A stretch of DNA of 21,560 bases, taken from positions 1-21,560 of the forward strand of contig MCFH01000171.1 of NCBI GenBank assembly GCA_002104945.1. The letters run 5' to 3'. Shown here piece by piece: positions 1 to 16,259 of the stretch. This DNA is from Piromyces finnis finn. Its lineage: Eukaryota > Fungi > Neocallimastigomycota. How positions within the stretch are numbered: the stretch's first letter is position 1; each line of letters opens with the position of its first letter. A program made the translations under genes and the position numbers. A model generated the notes under the pieces. It saw only the letters and a list, made by a program, of their open reading frames with translations, was not told the DNA's origin and did no database searches.

Positions 1-255
1 TTTTGAATTTTATTTTAATTATTAATTATTTAATCCAATTTATTTTTAGATTGATGATTAATATATATATATATTAGTGTATTAATGTATTCATGATTGT
101 AATTTTAATAATTTTTAATGAAAAAGATCTATTAATATTAATCTATTATAATAAAATTTAAAATTAAATGTTATTTTTAAGTAAAAATTTTCATATTTTC
201 TTTAAATTCTTTATTTATAATATTAATTTTAATGCATATTGATAAAATTAATAAT

Positions 256-336
256 CCTTGGGAACGTACCTTCATTTATTTAATAAATGAAGTTTCCTAA
301 GTGGCCCTACTCAAGCTCATGGTACTGAGAGAGTAG
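256..336 (+). ncRNA. Candidate structured RNA motif, copy 1 (pseudoknotted; putative ribozyme or 5'-processing element of the LINE)
   Basis: Manual folding. Stem CTTGGGAA(257-264)/TTCCTAAG(294-301) encloses unpaired CGTACC (265-270), a 9-bp AU hairpin (271-291) and an unpaired GT (292-293). A second hairpin CTACTC(307-312)-AA-GCTCA-[TGGTAC 320-325]-TGAGA-GAGTAG(331-336) follows. Loop GGTAC is complementary to GTACC 266-270. The whole motif recurs at 461-540. Function is inferred only. Confidence 0.55.
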
Positions 337-460
337 AGTTGATAATCTGAGTGTTTGTTATATCATTTTTTCTTCCATCTTCTAAAATTTCCACTAATTA
401 TATAATATATCCGTCTTTACTAATATTATTTATATCTTACTATATATTTCAATACTTCAA

Positions 461-540
461 CCCTGAGGGAACGTACCGTCATTTATTAAAATGAAGTTTC
501 CCGAAGGGGTCTACTCAAGCTCGTGGTACTGAGCGAGTAG
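461..540 (+). ncRNA. Candidate structured RNA motif, copy 2
   Basis: Stem CCCT-GA-GGGAA(461-471)/TTCCC-GA-AGGG(498-508), then GTACC 473-477, AU hairpin 479-494 and hairpin CTACTC-AA-GCTCG-[TGGTAC 524-529]-TGAGC-GAGTAG. Differences from copy 1 fall mostly in a loop or the linker, or keep base pairing (A-U to G-U, G.A to G-C). Confidence 0.55.
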
Positions 541-585
541 AAAAAATAATAAATAAATCCAATCATTGCGCAATGGATGTTTGGT

Positions 586-635
586 TGGTCTTTATTGGGA
601 AATATTATAAAGACTAAGCTCATGGTACTGGGCGA
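586..635 (+). ncRNA. Partial third copy of the motif (TGGTAC-loop hairpin preceded by a different 10-bp stem)
   Basis: AA-GCTCA-[TGGTAC 623-628]-TGGGC-GA at 616-635, with a U-G wobble replacing U-A. The preceding stem is TGGTCTTTAT(586-595)/ATAAAGACTA(607-616). Confidence 0.4.
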
Positions 636-1231
636 ATTATTTTTTTTTTCCATCGAGTATTAGTTTATTTGATGGATAAGTTGAATGTTGATATTCAGGT
701 AAGTTTGTTTAGTATTTAATTAGAAGAGTAATACATTTTTGTTGCTGTATTTTTTCTTTTAATTCATGTATTTATGTAGTACTACTCTTCTCTTGTAAGA
801 ATCCAATGTAGTCAACTTTAGCATTTGCATTGTATTTTTATATTCATGTAGCTATGGTTGAATTGTTTCCTGTAAGAGATTGATTTACTCTGTATCATGT
901 AAAAATACTATTCACAATCTTTCTGATGTCGACATTCAATTCCGATTTAAAATCTTACCAATTTAAATATTTATGAAAAAGTAAAGTCAAATAATTTTTA
1001 GTGTCAAAAAGCGAATCGAATTTACTAACAACAAACCAAAACTAGAATTTACAAAGAAAAATTACAACTTCAAATTAAAAAAAAGAAATTATAATCAAAG
1101 CATTGAAACAATTTTTTGTACTATTCAGTACTTTTTTAAGAAGAGAGATACAGATTTTTCCCATTATATTTATAATTATTTATTAGTTCTTATTTTATAT
1201 TCAATTTATTTTTTAATTAGAATTAATTATC

Positions 1232-1610
1232 ATGTCCGTTCTTTATATCAAAGATAAGAATTATATTAGACGTGGTACCCGCTCTTATGGTATTCCCTTA
1301 GATAATATTAGATCCTTCTTTATCCGTGGTATTCGATCATGGTCAGTTAGCAAACTATAGGAAAAACTCGAGGTTATTCTGAAGGACAATTTTAATTCAG
1401 TTATTAGTGTTAAATATTTGAAGAATTTCAATGATCACTTTTTCACTTTTTCTTAGTCAAGGTTCATGGTTCAATGAAAGACTGTTATAATATTTTACAC
1501 ATCTTAAGGAAGAAACTTTCAACTGCCAAAATTTCCTTTTCAGCTCGTAGTAGAAGGAATCACAAATACACTTTTTCTTCACTCAAACGTAAATTTTTAG
1601 TTTCCAATAA
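1232..1610 (+). pseudogene. N-terminal (ORF1-like) region of the LINE protein, possibly an RRM-like RNA-binding domain; interrupted
   Basis: ATG 1232 reads MSVLYIKDKNYIRRG...SFFIRGIRSWSVSKL*(TAG 1358)EKLEVILKDNFNSVISVKYLKN..HFFT, then one added T (run 1447-1451) gives FFLVKVHGSMKDCYNILHILRKKLSTAKISFS. The beta-alpha-beta-beta-alpha-beta pattern was judged by eye. A stop-free stretch in another frame (985-1257) could extend the N-terminus. Confidence 0.4.
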
Positions 1611-1766
1611 AAAAACAACAATCAACAACATCAATTCAACAATCATCTCAACAATCATCTCAACAATCTCATCAACATTCAGATCATTAATAACGATGAC
1701 AATAATAATAATAGTTATAGCAACGATTCTTGCTCATCCAACAAGCCCGATAATTTTTCTTTCTGT

Positions 1767-2410
1767 CTTAGTTGGAATACCAATGGGTGGAATCATGAGA
1801 AGAGAGATAGCATTAGCTATTTCACAGCTATTTTATAAACCATTATTTTTATGCTTTCAAGAAACTGGTAATAATTCTGGATCGAATACAGAGTATCCTT
1901 GTCGTGTTACTTTGCGAAATTATAGACACTTTTTCAAGAAAGCTGATGAATTAGTTCCTGGAATGAGAGGTTTATATTTAGGTATTCACAATTCGTGTCA
2001 AGCCTCACTTGAAAACTTCTTAGGTAAGTATATTATCTCTATTTATACTTTTAGCCTTTGGAATAGATTCAAATGCTCGATTGGGAATGTTTATATGCCT
2101 CATAGTCATCACAACATCTATGTTGATCATTCAAAGTTAGAAGTTCGCTTGTGGTTACAAACTCACTCATCTCATCCATCGATTCTTGTTGGTGATTTTA
2201 ATATGTCTAAAGTAAAATTATCCAACTGGTTATCACTAATGGATTAGGAGATTGGGAATTCTTCCCTTAAAGGTTCTCTATCTCTTGGACTCGAGGTGAT
2301 CAATCTTCCGACATTGACATGCTCTTATCAATTCGAAGATGAAAGATCTTATTCACTCAGGATCATTTATAAATAATTTTTATCCTGTATCAGACCATAA
2401 GCCACTTCTT
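1767..2410 (+). pseudogene. APE-type (exonuclease/endonuclease/phosphatase) endonuclease domain of the LINE, split across frames
   Basis: LSWNTNGW (1767-1790), FQET (1855-1866), GNVYMP, ILVGDFN (GDFN 2191-2202), DIDHALIN (after +1 C at 2318) and VSDHKP (SDH 2390-2398). These are the canonical catalytic motifs in the correct order. Confidence 0.9.
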
Positions 2411-3286
2411 ATTAATGGTAAATTATTCCTATGGAAGATTTTTCTAATGACTTTAATGTTCCTAAGAAAATTCTGAAATGGAATAGATTAAAATGTATTG
2501 AGGAAAAGGAATCTATTCTCAGTCATAATAAATTCCAAATACTTTCAGCAAAATCAACGATCCTAATGTTTCTACAGATGAACTTTCTCAAAGAGTTTAC
2601 TTCAACTGCTTTTTCAATTGCAGACGAGCTCAGTATTACTTCAGCAAATAATGTTATAAAGTCTTCATTTCATATTTCACAACAAATTTTTAATCTTCAA
2701 AAAATCAAAATGAAGTTGTATAAGAGATTTAAAAAAGAAAGAATTTATGATATAGATGAATTTATTAAAAGAATTAAAATCTACCGTAACTCATTGATTA
2801 CATCCACAAAAGAGTAATGAATTTAGGAACAAGAATATCTTCATTGGATTAAAACAGGATGTGAGTATATGAAGAGTCATAATCCTAAGAAGGCCTGGAA
2901 ATGGATCAAGAAAACTGCAAAAATTGGAAAAGATTTTTCTTTATTGCTCAACCAATTAAAAATAAAAAGGAGAATTAGTTGTTGCTACGGAAGAACAACT
3001 AGATGTGTGGCATGATCATTTCGAAAATCTTGCATCAACCAAGTGGTGTAAGTCTTGATTTGGAGCATTGGTATGAAGAACCAACGAATAAACGTTTTTC
3101 ACTTCCTATGCTTGATGAGTGGGATATCAACCAAGATATTAGTATTGATGAAGTCAAGTCAGCTATCCTCTCTACTCCAAATTATAAAGCATCAGGTCCG
3201 GATGGTATTCCAATTGAATTTTACAAAGCATTAATTCCATCAAGTAATGATTCTAATAATGCTACAGATAATAATTCTTCTGGTAA

Positions 3287-5542
3287 TACACTTCAGATAA
3301 TGATGCTCATGGTTTAAATTTTATTCTTAAATTATTCAACCGTATTTGGGATGGAGATTTCCCCAACTCATGGAATGAATCCAGTATTGTTTCTATTCCT
3401 AAGAAGGGAGATTTGACAGATTGTGATAACTATCGAGGTATATCACTTATCAATAATGGTATTAAGTTGATTTCCAAAATTGTCACCACTAGAATCTCAG
3501 AATATGGTTTAAAGAATAATTTCATTAGACCTGAACAATTTGGTTTTCGAAAAAAGGAAGAAAGTATTAGTCTTTTCATTTCAATCCAAGAAATATGCCG
3601 TAGACGTCAATTAGATAATAAAGAGACATATTTGGCCTTTTTAGATCTCAGGAAAGCATACGATTCAGTCCCAATCGGTAATATTCTCCATAAATTAGAT
3701 TGTTTAGGAATCCGAGGTAAGAGTTTACAATTTATCAAAAATTTATATTTAACATCTAAGGCTAATGTCAAATTAGATGGACAATTCTCGAAATCTTTTG
3801 ATGTGAAGAAAGGAGTCCGTCAAGGTTGCCCTCTTTCTCCTATTCTCTTTAATCTCTTTATTAATGATATATTTAGAGAGTGCGAAGATCTAGGAGTCAG
3901 TTTAGGTGACACTCGATGCTGTGGTGGACTTTTTGCAGATGATATAGTTATTTGTGCTCCAACAAGAGGATGCTTAAAAAAGATGCTTAGAAGAGTTAAT
4001 GAATGGGCATTGTATAATGAAATGGAATTTGGTATCCAGAAATGTTCAACGATGGTGATTCGTCCTGAATCAATAGAAAATCAGAACAAGAGAGATCCAA
4101 CATTTTACTTAGCAGGACAACCCATTCCAACTACTGATTGCTATACTTATCTTGGTGTTCCATTTGATAAGAATCTGTCCCTTAAACCAGTAATTAAAGC
4201 TCTTAATAACAAGGTTTTGAAAGGGCTTTTCTCAGTCAGTAAATTCTTAAGAAATCCTAATATTCCTATTCCCTTCAAAAAGCTAGTACTTAACTCACAA
4301 GTGATTAGTAGAGTTTCATACTTTGCACCATTACTTGGATCCAACAAAGCTAGGTCTAGGATTGCTCAGAAGCATGTTAACAAAGGAATACGATGGGTTG
4401 CCGGAGTTCATAAAGCTGTATCGTTTATATCTTTATACTCTATTTCAAAAGATTTGAATATTCCTCCATTGTCAGCCAAATGTGCGTTAGCTCAGGTTAG
4501 ATGTTTTAACAAATGGAAAAACTCAAATTGTATAATCTCACACCTTGTCAATTACATTCCTAAATTTAGAAAATACACGTGGTGCAAATCAAGTAGGACA
4601 CTTGATAAAAAACTAAAGAAACATGGAGATGTTAAAGCAGTTAAAAACTTTTATTGGAAAGATCTCAAAGGGAATTCAATCAAAGCGCAATATTATGATG
4701 ATAATAAATTTATTGAAACTAAAGATTTTATTAAATTATGTTATGAGTACCCAGAGTTTGCCTATGGCTTCTACTGGCTATTGAAAGCAAGAAGCGGATA
4801 CAAGTTGGATGCTAGAGTTGCCAAAGCTGCCAAATTTGTTGATCCAGTTTGTCCTAACTACTGTCCATGTTGCAAGTGTGGAGATCAAAGTATTAAACAT
4901 TGGTTATTAGATTGTCCAACATTTAGAGATATCCGTATTAAACATTATGATTCTATAGTCCATCTATTAAATTTTTTCAGTCAACGTAATTCCAATAGTC
5001 CTATCAATAATAATGAAATTGATAATATCAGTAGAGATAGTAATAACATTAATAGTAATAGTAACAATAGTAGTAATAACAATAGTAATAGTAACAATAG
5101 TAATAATAACAATAATAGAAATAATAATATTAGTAATGATAGCAATAGTGAAGATAATAATTCTAATTTAGATAGTAATTTAGTTAATGATAGTAATAGT
5201 TCTAATAATCCGGTGAATATTAATGTGTATGATTATTCTAGTGTGTGCAGTAAAATATTTAAATTCCTTCTTGGGGGAAGAAGTTTTAACAATATTAATT
5301 ACAATTCAAGGGAATGGAAAGAACTTTGTAAGCGTCAGATTCAATCTGGTACTAACGAAGGAACACCATTCTTGACGGTAACCGCGGAACTTCTAACCAA
5401 AATCATGCCTTTTGCTATTGGCCAGCAATGGACAATGTTCAAAAGGTTTGAAGCAACATCCAAGAGCGTCAATGCTGAAGAAACAGTAAGACAGGCCAGG
5501 AGGGCCAGCGCAACCAATGGAGATCATAATTTTGTTCCATGA
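3287..5542 (+). CDS. Reverse transcriptase plus C-terminal CCHC zinc-finger portion of the LINE ORF (uninterrupted frame)
   Basis: Motifs IPKKGD..NYRGISL, QFGFR, FLDLRKAYDSV, GVRQGCPLSPILFN, FADD (3932-3943), YTYLG and CPCC..H..C (4862-4915). The upstream GPDG motif lies in the 3003-3317 frame. The frame is open from 3287, so the ORF-track TTG start at 3413 is not a true start. Confidence 0.95.
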   Translation, partial: YTSDNDAHGLNFILKLFNRIWDGDFPNSWNESSIVSIPKKGDLTDCDNYRGISLINNGIKLISKIVTTRISEYGLKNNFIRPEQFGFRKKEESISLFISIQEICRRRQLDNKETYLAFLDLRKAYDSVPIGNILHKLDCLGIRGKSLQFIKNLYLTSKANVKLDGQFSKSFDVKKGVRQGCPLSPILFNLFINDIFRECEDLGVSLGDTRCCGGLFADDIVICAPTRGCLKKMLRRVNEWALYNEMEFGIQKCSTMVIRPESIENQNKRDPTFYLAGQPIPTTDCYTYLGVPFDKNLSLKPVIKALNNKVLKGLFSVSKFLRNPNIPIPFKKLVLNSQVISRVSYFAPLLGSNKARSRIAQKHVNKGIRWVAGVHKAVSFISLYSISKDLNIPPLSAKCALAQVRCFNKWKNSNCIISHLVNYIPKFRKYTWCKSSRTLDKKLKKHGDVKAVKNFYWKDLKGNSIKAQYYDDNKFIETKDFIKLCYEYPEFAYGFYWLLKARSGYKLDARVAKAAKFVDPVCPNYCPCCKCGDQSIKHWLLDCPTFRDIRIKHYDSIVHLLNFFSQRNSNSPINNNEIDNISRDSNNINSNSNNSSNNNSNSNNSNNNNNRNNNISNDSNSEDNNSNLDSNLVNDSNSSNNPVNINVYDYSSVCSKIFKFLLGGRSFNNINYNSREWKELCKRQIQSGTNEGTPFLTVTAELLTKIMPFAIGQQWTMFKRFEATSKSVNAEETVRQARRASATNGDHNFVP
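4985..5220 (+). repeat. Low-complexity AAT/AGT/AAC tract encoding an Asn/Ser-rich segment inside the LINE ORF
   Basis: Translation NSNSPINNNEIDNISRDSNNINSNSNNSSNNNSNSNNSNNNNNRNNN..., in frame and without stops. Confidence 0.9.
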
Positions 5543-5752
5543 CAAAATTTTGATCTTTGGCTCGGTGTCCCATTGGAAGTCAAATACAATTATTATACTT
5601 TAGTATGATAGTGGCTTTCTTACTTTAATTAAAATTACTAGAATACATTATACCCAATTTTTATTCATTTGTGTTTATTTAAACATATTTTTTTTATTTT
5701 TATTTTATTTTAATTTTTATATTACATGTATTATAATTTTAATTAAATTAAT

Positions 5753-5777
5753 AATAAAGTTTAAAATATTTGATGCC

Positions 5778-5814
<37 letters not shown>
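5753..5814 (+). terminator. LINE 3' end: AATAAA signal and poly(A) tail
   Basis: AATAAA at 5753-5758 and 34 consecutive A at 5781-5814, 238 nt after the stop codon. Confidence 0.8.
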
Positions 5815-5818
<4 letters not shown>

Positions 5819-5986
5819 TATTACATTCCAATATTTCTACTCTGTCTAAATACTAAAACGTTAATTCTGTCGTTGTTAACTATTAAAACCTTAACTAAAA
5901 CAAGAAGCCCTCTTAATAATAATTATTCCCTAGACTTACTTAATAACTAATTGATTATACAATTACATTATTCTTTTACATTACTA

Positions 5987-6716
5987 GGCCTTAAAATCAT
6001 TTCAAAAATCGTAACTGATAAAATCTCAAAGTATACACATTCTCATAATTTTATCAGACCTGAGCAATTTGGTTTTCGTAATAAGGAAGAATGCATTAGC
6101 TTATTTATTTCCATTAGAGAAATCTGTCAAAGAAGAAAGTTTAAAGGAAAAGCCACTTATGTTGCTTTCCTTGACCTCAAAAAAGCGTACAACTCGGTTC
6201 CTATATTTAATATCCTTACAAAGTTATATAAATTAGGTATACATGATAAATGTATTGATTTTCTCAACAATCTTTACTCTACCTCAAAAGCTTGTGAACG
6301 TTTCTTGGATATACTCTAATGAATTTCCTATCAACGGTGGTGTAAGACAAGGAATTTAAGGATTCCAACACTTTCAGGTATTTGTGCTGCGCAACAAGTG
6401 AAATGCTTTGCTAAATGGAGAAAATCAAACTGTATTAATAATGATCTCGTCCGATTTATTCCCTCCCATGTTCATTACTTTTGGGCTAAAGAATCTTGTT
6501 CACTACATAAGAAACTTACGAAAATAAATATTAAAAGTACTAAAGATATTAGAGAACATTATTGGAATAATAGTAGCCTAAATAATGGAAGTAAAGCCCT
6601 CAGATATACTAACAACAAATTCTTTAATTCAAATCGCCTAATGCATATCGCACTTAATTTTAGGAACTACTTGGATTGACCAATCCATACAGTACGAATT
6701 TCAAAGTTCATTGAAC
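5987..6716 (+). mobile_element. Truncated, internally deleted relic of a related LINE subfamily (RT N-terminal half joined to the post-RT region)
   Basis: GLKIISKIV..EQFGFR..AFLDLKKAYNSV..GVRQG(6339-6353) joins directly to NLRIPTLSGICAAQQVKCFAKW, which matches DLNIPPLSAKCALAQVRCFNKW of the first element. The PLSP, FADD and YLG motifs are absent, and there is no poly(A). Confidence 0.9.
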
Positions 6717-7039: not shown

Positions 7040-10000
7040 ATGGATTTCGCAAGTTTTATGCTTGTTTTGAAGGAAAACTATCCTAATGTTAGTTTGTCCG
7101 AAGATGAAGAAGAATACATTAGTTCATTATTTGAAGATGAAATCTCTATGGACGAATTAAAAGATGTAACAGAAGCTTTCCTTCAAAATGCTGGTATGGG
7201 TGATGATGACTGTAGTCAATTTTATACATTATTAGATAAAAAATTCAATTTAAAAGCCAATGATGTTCCAGAAGAGCCAATAAAAGTTGAACCGGTAAAC
7301 TTATATTGAATAAATAAATAAAACAATAATTGATTTTTACTACCTTTTTAAATATTATTTTTAAGAAAATCCATTTTAAAATTAAAACAAATTTATTTAA
7401 ATATATTCTTTTATATATATTACTATTATAAATAAATCTTTTATAATAATTTATCAATTAAATCATTATTACATAATAATGCATTGATATATTTTAAAAT
7501 AATATTATTAACAATACAATTCAACAAATAAAAAACAATATATATAAATGTATTTCTAAACATGATATGTAGGCTACAATTGAAAAAAATCTTTCACAAA
7601 TGTCACTCAATTCAGAAAAAGTTGAACCAAAAAAGACATTATTAACCTCAAGTTCACCAACCAATACTAAAAAGGGTAGAGCCGCTAAGGGTAGAAGAAG
7701 AGAAAGAAATAAAACAAAGAGTGTTGAAGACACAAAGGAAGATGATGAAGACAAGACATATGATTCACTTAAAAGTATTAATGCATTTTCACAAGTTTCA
7801 CGTTATCACACTGAAACCATTGATTCATATGCCAAAGATATTGATCTTAAAGATTTAAATATTTTAGTTGGAGATAGAGAAATTTTAACCGATGCAAATT
7901 TAAAATTAAATCAAGGTGTTCATTATGGTTTAATTGGTCAAAATGGAATTGGAAAATCAAGTAATTATAATTCTATATTCATTATTAATATTATTATGCA
8001 AAATTAAACAAAACAAAATAAACAAACAAACAGAAAAAAAAAAAATACATAATATACTAATTAAATGAATTCACATTTTACGAAAAACTATATTATTTTT
8101 CTTATTAATTATAATTAGCATTATTAAAGGCAATTGGATATAAGTTAATTATTGGTTTCCCAGAACAAGTTCAAACTCATTATGTTGAACAATTAGAAAA
8201 TGTTAATTTAGAAATGTCAGTAATTGATACCATTTTAGAAAGTGATAAAAAGGCAGAAAGAATTAAGAAAGAACACAAATTACTTCAAGAAGCAGTTGAA
8301 GGAGGAAATACTCAAAGTATTGTTAAAACAGTCTTACAAATTAAGTATGATAGACTTTGTAGTGCATTAGAAGATCAAGAAAAAGTTTTTAAAAGAAGAA
8401 GCCGTGAACGTGCTAAAGAAGCTAGAGCAAAGTATTTTGTTATTGAAGAACAAGTTAAAGAAGCTGAAAAGTAATAAATTATATATATATATATATAAAT
8501 ATATAAATATATAAATTATACATTATACATATATAAATTATACATATAAATTGATAAATTATTTATTATACTTATTTGTTATATTTAATAATTATTATAT
8601 TTATTAATTATAATATTTATTATTATTTATATCTATTTATCATTTATATTGATTATTATTCATATTGATTATTAATTGATTAATTGATTATTAAAATTCC
8701 TATTATATAAGAAATTTAACGAAAAAGTATTCACACGATGAAGAGCAACAACTTGTTTTAGAAGGAACCGAAATGTTAAATGATTTATATATTGAACTAG
8801 ATTTAGTAAGTTATTAAAATCCTAAAAATTTTACATGTTTATATCTATATCTATGTTTATGTCTATATATGAATTATTGAAGTTATAGTCAAAGACAAAA
8901 TACTGATTTCTAATAATATTAATTTTTAATAATATTAATTATTTATAAAAAAAATATATGTTACTTAAAATATAATAAAAAAAAAAAAAAAAATTTAGAT
9001 TGATGCAGATGCACTTTACGCCAAGGCCTCCAAAATTTTAAGTGGTCTTGGTTTTTCAGAAGAATGGCAAAAAGGACCAATGAAGAATTTATCAGGAGGA
9101 TGGAGAATTAGAGCATCATTAGCTCAAGCTTTATTCCTTGAACCATTTATTCTTTTATTAGATGAACCTAGTAAATATCATTTTTAAATTATCATTTGAA
9201 TACTTTACTTGTTACTATGTTGTTGAATTTTTTTTTATTTATTTTTTAAAATGATAATGTTTTTTATTATAAATATTAATATAATACTCTATTTTTTTTT
9301 ATTATAATAAAAAGCAAATCATCTTGATTTCCCAGCTATTATTTGGCTTGAAGGTTATTTAAAATCATTAACTGAAACTACCTTAGTGATTGTTTCTCAC
9401 GATCGTGCATTCCTTAATGAAGTAGTTGATGAAATTATTGTTTTAAAGAATAAAACATTAAAATATTATTCAGGAAATTATGATATATATGAACAAGCTT
9501 ATGAAGAAGATCAATTACACAAACAAAGACAAAAAGAAACCATTGAAAAGAAAAAGCAAGCTTTACAACAAAATATTCAAAAGAATTTACAAATGGCCAG
9601 AAAAAGTGGAGATGATAAAAGACTTCAACAAGTTGCTAGTAGAAAGAAGGTTTGATACTAAAGTTAAATTATAATAAATTATAATTTCACATCAATAGTT
9701 TTGAAAATATATATATTATTTATTAATATTAAATTTATAAACAATATAAATAATTTTTACTGTTTTTTTTTTTTTTTAAAAAAATTAAAAATATTAATAA
9801 TGTTTTATATTTAAATTTTTAATAAAAGAAATTAGTTGAAAGAACAGGTCTTGAAACCAATCAATATGGTTTTAAATTTAAGCTTAATCGTGATATGGTT
9901 GGATACTTTGATTCAAACCGTATTGATGTTGAATTAGATACAGCTAATGCAAAACCACATTGGGATATTCCAGAACCAGGTGTTTTAAGAAATAAAGATT

Positions 10001-10875
10001 CTATATTGAAGGTTCAAAATTTGTCTTATAAGTATGGCAATAATTTACCATGGATCTTAAGAGATATTTCCTTAAATATTGAACTTGGTAATAAAGTTGG
10101 TATTGTAAGTGTCAATCCACAACAATTGTTGTTAAGTAACATTATATATATATATATATATTTTTTTTTTTCATATTAAAACTAAATTTATTTAGTCATC
10201 AATTTTATTAGTTGTTAAACTCGTATTAATAATATTTTTTAATATTAATGTTTATTTTGATGCAATGAATTTAATAATAATGCATTCCGTTACCATTAAT
10301 ATCTTATAAATTTATAGATGGGTTCTAATGGAGAAGGTAAATCTACTTTTGTATCATTAATTTCTGGTAGATTTAATCCAGTAGACGGAACTATTCTTCA
10401 TCATCCACAAGCAAAAATTGGATGTTTCGAACAACACGATGTAGAAAAATTAGTCAATACTTACAAGAATTTAAATTGTATTCAATACCTTTCACAACTT
10501 TATCCAGAAGCCCAAAGCCAAGATTTATATAATTTAATGGGATCATTTGGTATTTCAGGATCCTTAGGACAAAATCCTATTTATACATTATCTGGAGGAC
10601 AAGTTGTAAGATTAATTATGGCATCCATCTTTTATAATAAACCACACTTTATTATTCTCGATGAACCTACTAATCACTTGGACACCGAAACGATTGAAGT
10701 CATGATTGAAAATTTAAAGAAATTTTCAGGATCTGTTATTATTGTTAGCCACGACCAATATTTTGTTGATCAAATTGCAGAAAGAGTATATTATTTAAGA
10801 AAACAAAGATTCCATAAATTAGAAGGAGGTGTTAAAGAATATATTAAAATTGTTAAAAAAGATATTAAAATGTAA
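7040..10875 (+). CDS. ABCF-family soluble twin-ABC ATPase (GCN20/ABCF3-like), 8 exons, 809 aa predicted
   Basis: Exons 7040-7294, 7573-7960, 8119-8470, 8712-8805, 8999-9170, 9315-9649, 9829-10104 and 10318-10875 (2430 nt, all GT-AG, phases consistent). Motifs are GQNGIGKST, LSGGW, LLLDEPTNHLD, VSHDR, then GSNGEGKST, LSGGQ, ILDEPTNHLD, VSHDQ. No transmembrane domain. Confidence 0.93.
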
Positions 10876-14016: not shown

Positions 14017-14199
14017 ATGTTAAAAGTAAGGAAAAGAATAGACGGTATACCTATATTTGATAAATTAGATAGACCATTATATCACTTAAATTCAGAAAAT
14101 GAAATAAATAAATATATGGTAGTAGTGGATGAGATTAATAATATAGAAGGACATTATATAAAATTAGATGATTGTTTAAAAGAAAATATGAGAAAATGA
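14017..14199 (+). CDS. 60-codon ORF, either the true N-terminus of the downstream gene (frameshifted) or a uORF
   Basis: ATG start and coding-like composition compared with the flanks. It overlaps the next ORF by 28 nt in the -1 relationship. Confidence 0.4.
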   Translation: MLKVRKRIDGIPIFDKLDRPLYHLNSENEINKYMVVVDEINNIEGHYIKLDDCLKENMRK

Positions 14200-16259
14200 A
14201 TATATATACCAAATCACCATTATCTAATAATACATATATTATAGAAGATCAATCGTCAATAAAATCAGTACTTGGCTGGATAAATAAATGGAATAATAAA
14301 AAGAAAATTTCAAAAAATTTTAAAATCAGAAAATCAAAATCAAAATATATAGGCAATTTAAATAACGAAATACCTCTTATTATTAAACTTTTTAAGTATA
14401 ATAAAAATAAGAAAATTGAAATGAACACAATTCATTTAAATGTTTACGCTGATGAAAATATATTAAATATAAAAGATAAATCAAAAAAGTTAAAAAAGAA
14501 TTTAAAGCCAGTTGAAAATAAGAAAAAACAAAACAAGAAAACTACTCCAAATCTTTTATGTATACCAATTAAATCAACAAAATTTAACTGGTTAAAGAAA
14601 AAAGAACAAAAAGAATTTGATGCTAATATGTCAATTGACGATTTTCAATTCCAAAGCTCTGATTTAAAAAGCTTTTTACCAATCAAATCCAATAATATAT
14701 TTGAACAAAGTAACTTTAAAACAGAAGAAGATAAAGGAATGGATATCAATGTTGATAAAATGTTAGATGATAAAGAAATAAAAAATTCTTTAAAGAGAGA
14801 AAGTAATAGTGAAATAATAAGAGAAAATTGTAAAAAGAGAAATGTAAAAACTGAAATGATAAATGAACAAAAGAACGATCAAAAAAATACTGGTAAAAAT
14901 AAACAATGCTTACAATCATTAGTAATACCAACTAATAATTTATATAAATTAAATAATAATTCAGCTAAAAATTTATCAGCTTCAACTCTTGGTAACAATG
15001 AATATTTTGATTGCCCAAAATATCAAGAAGCAACTTCATACATGCCATCACCATGCAATTCAACAGCATCTACATTGGTATCACCAGTAGCATCTGTTTC
15101 CCCTAAAATAGAATCAAAATTTGAAATAGATTCTTGTGATTATGCTGATTTTTTAAAAGAGAGAATTAATGAACAATCAGAAAATAACGAAGTTACTGAT
15201 TTAGAAAGAAAGCATTGTTCATTACCATTATGTCCAGAAAATATAAAAAATAGAAAAACTCGTAGAAGATCATATGCATTTTCATTGACTTCAAATGAAT
15301 TTAATTTAATATATTCTGAAGCTAATCAAGCTGTTATTTCAGGGTTATGTAAAACCGTTGAAAATAAACAAAATAAGAAAAGTGAAAGAGAGAAACTTAC
15401 CACAAAAAAGGATGAAGGTGAAAAACCATTTATTAAAGGTCACTCTAGAACGCAATCTAGACACCGTCGTTCTCATGCTGTTTGTCTCTCAAGTGAACAA
15501 ATATTAAACTTTGGTAATGAAGATGACTCAAAACAAATTAATAATGGAGTTTCCTTATCTTCATATGCTATATTAAATTCAAATTCAAAAACTAATAAAG
15601 ATACCCAACTTAAGAGAAGAAGCACAAATATAATTAAATATAAAAATTCTAATTCATCTCTTAGTTCTTCAAATAGTTTTTGTAGTAATTCAGGAAATAT
15701 GAGACCTCTATCAACAAACAGGTTATCTCGTGATATTGAATTATTAAGAGCTATGAAAATGAAAAGAAGTAGATCCGTACCAAAATTGGATCAACCGGAA
15801 TCAAATAGAAGTCCTTCTAATTCAAGATTTAGTATGGATGTTACTTCTTATAAAGAAAATATTGGAATAAGTCTTCATAGTAATTCAACAAATAGTCTTA
15901 CTCCTCCAAGTAATATTGTATATTATTCTTTTAATAATAAAAATGAAAATAATTCTATGTTGGATGGATATAAAAAAAATAACAATCGTGGAAGTTATGG
16001 TTTATTTACTGATACTATTAATCAAAAAACCAATATAACAAGTCGATGGAGTAATGTTTTTGAAAGCAGTAGTTGTGGAAGTAGTACCTATTGTAATAGT
16101 GAAGAAGATGGTTTTCATAATAATGGAATAGTCAATTCCAAGGAAGATTTATTAAATTTTGAATTAGCTAATAAGAGTTTTAATGAATCAATTCAAAATG
16201 AATCACCGGAAATCATTGTTCAACGTCCACCACCAACACCAATGATTGGAATGCTATAA
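14172..16259 (+). CDS. Hypothetical intronless Ser/Asn/Lys-rich, probably disordered protein (first in-frame ATG 14196)
   Basis: A 2.1-kb open frame in very AT-rich DNA. I recognise no domain. It has several basophilic R-R/x-x-S sites and a C-terminal RPPPTP. Confidence 0.8.
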   Translation: MFKRKYEKMNIYTKSPLSNNTYIIEDQSSIKSVLGWINKWNNKKKISKNFKIRKSKSKYIGNLNNEIPLIIKLFKYNKNKKIEMNTIHLNVYADENILNIKDKSKKLKKNLKPVENKKKQNKKTTPNLLCIPIKSTKFNWLKKKEQKEFDANMSIDDFQFQSSDLKSFLPIKSNNIFEQSNFKTEEDKGMDINVDKMLDDKEIKNSLKRESNSEIIRENCKKRNVKTEMINEQKNDQKNTGKNKQCLQSLVIPTNNLYKLNNNSAKNLSASTLGNNEYFDCPKYQEATSYMPSPCNSTASTLVSPVASVSPKIESKFEIDSCDYADFLKERINEQSENNEVTDLERKHCSLPLCPENIKNRKTRRRSYAFSLTSNEFNLIYSEANQAVISGLCKTVENKQNKKSEREKLTTKKDEGEKPFIKGHSRTQSRHRRSHAVCLSSEQILNFGNEDDSKQINNGVSLSSYAILNSNSKTNKDTQLKRRSTNIIKYKNSNSSLSSSNSFCSNSGNMRPLSTNRLSRDIELLRAMKMKRSRSVPKLDQPESNRSPSNSRFSMDVTSYKENIGISLHSNSTNSLTPPSNIVYYSFNNKNENNSMLDGYKKNNNRGSYGLFTDTINQKTNITSRWSNVFESSSCGSSTYCNSEEDGFHNNGIVNSKEDLLNFELANKSFNESIQNESPEIIVQRPPPTPMIGML

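Follow-up and report, generated by a model that had tools for sequence, protein, structure and literature searches.

Each new copy of a LINE must have its 5' end rebuilt in full, and to our knowledge few solutions for this end are known, namely internal promoters, HDV-like ribozymes, and the protein-binding 5' RNA of R2. The pseudoknotted 5' RNA of R2 binds the protein of the element, and the 5' UTR of mouse L1 is built from monomers of ~200 bp, which work as promoters at the DNA level and are passed on intact within their arrays. In R2, RTE, and L1Tc, HDV-like ribozymes free the LINE RNA from the upstream transcript (PMC3185411, PMC3774820). The module of Trypanosoma cruzi L1Tc (Pr77, or L1TcRz) is an HDV-like nested double pseudoknot that cleaves in vitro (PMC3185411, PMC3383444).

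Here we describe a structured RNA module of Piromyces finnis, hereafter the head, for which no description was found in the literature. The head is well supported as a conserved, structured, and uncatalogued 5'-terminal RNA fold of APE/RT LINEs of anaerobic gut fungi. A long P1 closes a junction that holds the unpaired CGU(A/G)CC together with an inner hairpin; next come hairpin B, which folds back and has a loop of the GUAC type, and hairpin C, whose loop reads GCGCAAUG. Like Pr77/L1TcRz, it is a ~80-nt module that occupies the first bases of its LINE and is common to several element families, and we propose that, as in Pr77/L1TcRz, one stretch serves both as internal promoter and as structured RNA; it differs from L1TcRz in topology, gives no match to HDV-like models, and is known here from its sequence. 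It also resembles the R2 5' end (PMC3774820) in being a structured 5' RNA of a LINE, one that may form a pseudoknot and would define the 5' junction in cis. R2, however, is specific to a site in the rDNA and co-transcribed with 28S, whereas the element carrying the head is dispersed and appears to be self-transcribed, and no sequence or model similarity between the two was found.

Two heads in two nested LINEs

The window, i.e., the whole stretch of 21,560 nt analyzed here (C81:1-21560), belongs to a genome of which 56.5 Mb in 232 contigs were searched, and it is very AT-rich (GC 10-36%). Two GC-richer look-alikes of ~80 nt had been predicted in it, and both are present on the + strand at 256-336 and 461-540, where a repeat search returned direct-repeat blocks at 260-283/467-490 (92%, 207 nt apart) and 285-346/489-550 (81%, 204 nt apart). 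Folding reproduced the structure that the original prediction had assigned to both copies: P1 encloses the unpaired CGUACC (J) and an AU hairpin, and hairpin B carries an internal loop and the apical loop UGGUAC. In copy 1 (MFE -27.8 kcal/mol, z -3.2; 96.9 bits with the covariance model), P1 pairs 256-264 with 293-301, J (CGTACC) lies at 265-270, the AU hairpin at 270-292, and hairpin B at 307-336 with its TGGTAC loop at 320-325. The corresponding parts of copy 2 (MFE -31.7 kcal/mol, z -4.2; 80.3 bits) are P1 at 461-471 with 497-508, GTACC of J at 473-477, the AU hairpin at 479-495, and hairpin B at 511-540 with TGGTAC at 524-529. GTACC (266-270, 473-477) is complementary to GGTAC (321-325, 525-529) in either copy. 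The 3-nt indel between the copies sits within the loop of the AU hairpin, and the sequences between and after the copies share nothing with each other, both as had been noted before.

What had been read as a device duplicated within one 5' UTR is instead the 5' ends of two different elements, as a guest LINE (461-5814) sits inside an older LINE from a second family (family B: L003, L006, L007, L010, and L098) and each brought its own head. Copy 1, which lacks about the first 3 nt, is the head of the family-B element and is followed at 337-389 by the first ~50 nt of the family-B 5' UTR (AGTTGATAATCTGAG...; 88% match to L007, L098, and L003), in the same order as in L003, L006, L007, and L010. 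The two heads are separated at 390-460 by a fragment of another dispersed repeat (at least 40 genome copies, with 86-97% identity to many loci), which always has the same internal context at its other loci. Similarity to the canonical element starts at 461, and copy 2 is therefore base 1 of the guest LINE and makes up its initial 80 nt. Further along the guest are hairpin C at 559-584 (CCAATCAT, loop TGCGCAATGG, ATGTTTGG; one U-U mismatch in this old copy) and a tail at 585-636 composed of a helix (585-615) and a third hairpin, GCTCA/TGGTAC/TGGGC (618-633), which the repeat search identified as a partial 20-nt copy of the apical hairpin (616-635).

The guest is a single-ORF APE/RT element of ~5.35 kb whose ORF is broken in the window copy and whose poly(A) lies at 5781-5814; in a BLAST comparison with a canonical copy, it was 85% identical over 468-1685 and 97.5% over 1685-5814. 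The body of the host element resumes 3' of it with the RT region at 5985-6677 on the + strand (89-91% identity to L098 and L006; RVT_1 at 5951-6319). A clean target-site duplication was looked for around the window guest and was not found. In a metagenome relative (L096:1100-1140), a head is likewise inserted within the RT-coding sequence of another LINE, so that other species also have nested LINEs.

Family B and the canonical LINE are 92% identical in the head and 88% in the last ~130 nt, yet their ORF proteins share only 33-49% identity (L098, G000:C162:1000-7950, minus strand, versus L081). This distribution of identity indicates that the head has been swapped between LINE families as a module, and both element ends seem to have been exchanged in this way.

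Two other features of the window were recorded. Positions 1-1845 are near-identical, flanks included, to G000:C196:10617-13706 (L001), and this contig-start copy reflects either assembly redundancy or a recent segmental duplication. Downstream of the LINEs, 7600-8007, 10318-10875, and 14172-16259 hold two ABC-transporter ATPase fragments and a 695-aa ORF without Pfam match; the ATPase fragments probably belong, as exons, to a single host gene.

The 5' end of a young, transcribed LINE family

Genome-wide, the head forms the exact first bases of a LINE family that is young and transcribed and has more than 150 near-identical heads. The occurrence of the head in the genome (>140 matches in BLAST and, at about 110 bits, >150 with the covariance model) is far beyond chance, and the near-identical canonical heads saturated the covariance-model search of this genome, among which no divergent copies were found. 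At ~25 loci with unrelated upstream flanks, similarity sets in exactly at (C)CCTCTTGGG or (C)CCTCTTGGGAACG, which is the 5' strand of P1, and 37 of the 43 distinct 5' junctions start with CCCT. The full copy L081:89-5784 has one 1508-aa ORF with an RT domain, an 892-nt 5' UTR, and a poly(A) tail, and is bracketed by the 10-bp target-site duplication GTAGACAATA, which sets the start of the element at C1 of CCCTCTTGGG. An endonuclease-type domain is seen in the window copy and in relatives of the family.

The base preceding CCCT in the 5' junctions of L012-L060 is T in about 27 of 37 cases and never G or C, and an extra T, TT, or AA is occasionally present at head-to-head joints. The T is probably a non-templated addition by the reverse transcriptase.

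Transcription was assessed by mapping Logan contigs on the canonical copy L016 and its flanks, with three runs from the same organism and one gut metatranscriptome; these contigs show neither RNA 5' ends nor strand nor end chemistry. The 500 nt upstream of the element were at depth 0 in all runs, and cover starts in the bin containing base 1 and runs on through the element (contigs of the three runs). A neighboring gene further upstream was very highly covered, so the data behave as RNA. This onset at the element rather than in the flank would suit a head that is an internal promoter monomer of the mouse L1 type, with ACGTGCC, TGGTAC, and TGCGCAATG as transcription-factor sites and with an incidental RNA fold. 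It argues against two other readings: a self-cleaving ribozyme of a new class that cuts at its own first base and frees the LINE RNA from an upstream transcript, as the original prediction had suggested, would find little co-transcript to remove next to a silent flank, and the silence also speaks against a 5' end made by a host nuclease. Moreover, contigs cross the positions at which a ribozyme would cut: one (X1 record 3, 1568-1654; depth about 1050) spans the junction of the first head with the second (M1 and M2) in a canonical copy, and one X2 contig joins 255 nt of foreign flank at base 2 of the head.

The 5' UTR of the window LINE also contains intron-like signals at 697-705, 1023-1029, and 1042-1045 (CAG|GTAAGT, then TACTAAC ~20 nt before AG). 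No joint of a spliced form of GTAAGT...TACTAAC...AG was present in the RNA contigs, which span the region unspliced.

Canonical copies carry two tandem 124-nt units, and other spacings (69 and 94-378 nt) exist, so that the tandem arrangement of mouse L1 monomers, i.e., short units at the 5' end whose number varies between copies, is found in the canonical family; the pair in the window arose from nesting instead. M2 occurs at many loci with different flanks and is therefore inherited in canonical copies. The units differ from mouse L1 monomers in their conserved sense-RNA fold and in that P1 of the inherited internal unit is damaged in every case. All 32 inherited M2 units have a central-P1 mismatch (G8A in 25, G10A in 5, and A47T in 2, with one A47T together with G10A), often with C44A in addition, and the changes fall on either strand of P1, 36-40 nt apart, and in M2 units of differing background. 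Perfect internal heads were found solely in one-off arrays of varied spacing (94-378 nt), which are better explained by nesting or template jumps at insertion. The probability that the mismatches concentrate in central P1 by chance is about 0.01 by a rough, post hoc estimate. A comparison of M1 and M2 diversity profiles was discarded because its copies had been selected for a perfect M1 and were thus biased.

Two loci, L051 (G000:C57:540552-540766) and L060 (G000:C112:1171427-1171641), have an identical joint (full head, CCCT, T, and a new head) on different M2 subtypes, which suggests repeated insertion or jumping at one head position.

The damage to inherited internal heads is what would be expected if an intact head always became the 5' end, and it hints at a role in defining this end at the level of the RNA; it fits self-cleavage, a nuclease stop, or a second start site alike. 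It counts for a ribozyme and, in that an intact head seems not to be heritable internally, equally for a host nuclease. Mouse L1 monomers pass on intact, and a passive promoter repeat would be expected to do likewise; the damaged M2 units, hit on both P1 strands at positions 36-40 nt apart, are unlike such a repeat. We regard as rather doubtful, though worth keeping in view, that the intact head sets the RNA 5' end through an RNA-level event, be it self-cleavage of a new class or a nuclease stop. If true, this would explain why all inherited internal heads have central-P1 damage on either strand and why perfect internal heads occur only in one-off arrays.

Head folds in related LINEs

Copies within the genome are young or decaying, and pairing among 20 distinct copies equaled that of shuffles (90.1% versus 90.0% of cells pair), so the fold was examined in relatives instead. 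These were LINE ORFs of 44-69% identity from a protein search of gut metagenome contigs (4-5.6 kb) and an Orpinomyces protein set, with contigs giving 500-1050 nt upstream of the ORF. Related heads were found upstream of these ORFs, as the original prediction requires, and in a comparison of distant heads that was partly made by eye, relatives with 44-57% protein identity retain P1, J, the inner hairpin, and hairpin B in a different spelling. At the scale of the genome, covariation was indistinguishable from shuffles; among relatives, the helices persist with changed letters. A covariance model built from the genome copies and run on the relatives with filters off recovered L083 (25 bits, E 7e-4), weakly L089 (11 bits), and no other head; a further match, at L084:287-377, lies in a different conserved part of the UTR and is probably a false one.

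The head of L083 (57% protein identity) has J ACGUACC and the loop UGGUGC, with the inner hairpin and both parts of hairpin B spelled otherwise. L084 and L089 have P1 CCCCUAGCA/UGCUAGGGG, J GGGGCGUACUCG, inner hairpins that differ between the two contigs, and a downstream hairpin AUUCCU-CAGUAC-AGGAAU. In L086 and L091, P1 is CCCUCC/GGAGGG, J is CCGUAA, hairpin B is GCUG-GUACGG/GUGCGG-CAGC, and hairpin C is UUAAACAUUA-UGCGCAAUGA-UAAUGUUUAA, and L088 has P1, J GAUACACC, the inner hairpin, a hairpin B with loop CGGUGU, and a hairpin C with loop GCGCAAUGG. The heads of L085 and L090 (51-58%) have a long P1 at the start and a different interior. Every head starts with (U)CCC(C), with GGG(G) a few bases on, and the hairpin C loop GCGCAAUG is retained on different stems in L086/L091 and L088.

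Folding favored the sense strand in all five lineages tested, with -43.4 kcal/mol for the sense and -29.0 kcal/mol for the antisense strand of the canonical head (L081), -37.1 and -34.6 kcal/mol in L083, -48.4 and -40.7 kcal/mol in L084, -33.4 and -29.2 kcal/mol in L086, and -44.0 and -33.3 kcal/mol in L088 (sense z -1.8 to -5.1), which agrees with the earlier observation that G-U wobbles favor the + strand, i.e., the sense strand of the LINE. The motif [UCG][AG]GU[AG][CU] with a stem of at least 4 bp was found in 12 of 18 cases in heads (plus two with a shifted stem) versus 3 of 288 elsewhere at the same loci, and six different stem spellings flank the GUAC-type motif in heads. These proportions are the unbiased figure; a count of hairpin pairs, for which hairpins had been pre-selected for four inner pairs, is descriptive only. 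On this evidence, we take the helices of the sense RNA to be real.

These data bear directly on whether the head acts as a promoter in DNA only. Short blocks conserved across lineages while the stems change, the tandem 124-nt units of the canonical family, and the exchange of the head between families all fit that account, but stems around the conserved blocks keep pairing with different letters, and the stability is sense-specific through G-U pairs in five of five lineages. Together with the damage on both P1 strands of internal heads, this makes it improbable, in our judgment, that the head is a promoter monomer with an incidental fold.

The complementarity of J and the apical loop extends over 5-6 positions in every lineage, with letters changed. 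The pairs are GUGCC/GGUAC in the canonical head, GUACC/GGUAC in the window, GUACC/GGUGC in L083, GUACU/AGUAC in L084, L096, and the old copy L008b, CGUACU/AGUACG in L089, CCGUA/UACGG in L086, CCGUA/UGCGG in L091, and GAUAC/GUGUC in L088. P1 and hairpin B are similar in length (9-12 bp), which a fold-back contact would need for the loop to meet J. Shuffles of J and loop gave p values of 0.02-0.35 per lineage and about 0.05 for four lineages combined (Fisher). Of the GTACC/GGTAC pseudoknot put forward originally, the complementarity therefore held in every lineage, but its statistics are marginal, and on these sequences the pseudoknot is plausible. The loop core GUAC is self-complementary, and loop-loop pairing between two RNAs is therefore an alternative. 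As regards an R2-type 5' RNA, the head has helices kept with different letters, a sense bias, and a pseudoknot that is compatible in all lineages (p about 0.05).

Sequence conservation across relatives (44-57% protein identity) is higher in another stretch of the 5' UTR than in the head. This stretch (window 740-915) contains repeated (C/U)AUGUA(G/A) and UUGUAAGA words and ends in ...GAUUCACUC..., and its equivalents lie at L081:500-660, L083:360-520, L085:290-450, L088:330-520, L095:120-300, and L096:1340-1530. The weak covariance-model match in L084 falls in its counterpart.

Known RNA classes and candidate mechanisms

The novelty originally claimed for the motif withstood a search of Rfam. 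At the gathering score, the whole window gave no match; at E<=10, cmscan of window 200-760 and of the canonical head returned only chance sRNA, snoRNA, and miRNA matches, and five relatives gave nothing relevant, with all ribozyme models included. ARAGORN detected no tRNA in its search. The reading that HDV, hammerhead, and twister cores are absent was also borne out, both by eye and by the lack of any such Rfam model at E<=10.

Specific classes were rejected on the following grounds. For an HDV-like ribozyme, no HDV-type Rfam model matched at E<=10, and the partner of J lies inside the hairpin B loop and not 3' of a P4; the AU hairpin that takes the place of P3 has 10 bp and a 3-nt loop, which leaves no possibility of a P1.1, and refolding by hand into an HDV-like form gave no fit. 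A hammerhead was discarded, as the head has CTGAGAG instead of CUGANGA, no GAAA junction on either strand, and no Rfam hammerhead match. Pistol, twister, twister-sister, and hatchet ribozymes are, like hammerheads and like the head, small RNAs with helices tied by loop-junction pairings, but the head, unlike all of these, gave no covariance-model match at E<=10 and lacks their conserved cores. No Rfam xrRNA family matched, and on inspection, the 5' strand appears to edge a closed loop rather than to be threaded through it.

The last point weighs on the idea that a host nuclease makes the 5' end, either as a 5'-3' exonuclease that stalls at the head in the manner of an xrRNA or as an endonuclease that recognizes the fold, with the RNA itself being non-catalytic. 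A precise 5' end and a stable fold from base 1 would be expected in that case, but the match to an xrRNA family is missing, the 5' strand seems not to be ring-threaded as in flaviviral xrRNA, and the upstream flank is silent; we consider a nuclease-made end very unlikely.

Self-cleavage by a new ribozyme class appears unlikely as well. P1 begins at base 1 of the insertions, the position it has in HDV-like retrotransposon ribozymes, which provide a precedent (PMC3185411, PMC3774820), and the exact 5' location, the compact fold with P1 and hairpin B alike in length, the J-loop complementarity with changed letters in every lineage, and the central-P1 mismatch in 32 of 32 inherited internal heads (post hoc p about 0.01) all speak for it. 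The original proposal nevertheless found no direct support: no Rfam ribozyme model matched even at E<=10, the fold has neither an HDV-like topology nor a hammerhead core, the presumed cleavage site has no conserved unpaired nucleotides beside it, contigs bridge the M1/M2 boundary and run from foreign flank into the head, and the statistics of the pseudoknot are marginal. Its fallback, another conserved RNA device of the 5' UTR, agrees with the exact 5' terminus, the transcription, the sense-biased fold, the kept helices, and the lack of an Rfam family.

The reading we favor, to which we give about an even chance, is that the head is a 5' cis module that works as part of an internal promoter in DNA and as a non-catalytic handle in RNA. 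As DNA, it would help to place the transcription start at base 1. As RNA, its fold would mark an intact 5' end, and the handle might act by shielding the end and/or, in the manner of the R2 5' RNA, by binding the protein of the element, so that propagation would be limited to RNAs whose first structure is an intact head. A pol II start at a C within a pyrimidine run is unusual and counts against the promoter part, and the P1 damage in all inherited internal heads fits a processing step better than a passive handle.

Overall, the very active LINE family described here begins, at base 1, with an uncatalogued conserved fold that is common to families whose proteins are only 33-49% identical. A young, abundant, and transcribed family with naturally crippled internal copies (e.g., G8A and G10A) is a convenient system for studying how LINE 5' ends are marked, and it also suits asking whether a further ribozyme class exists.
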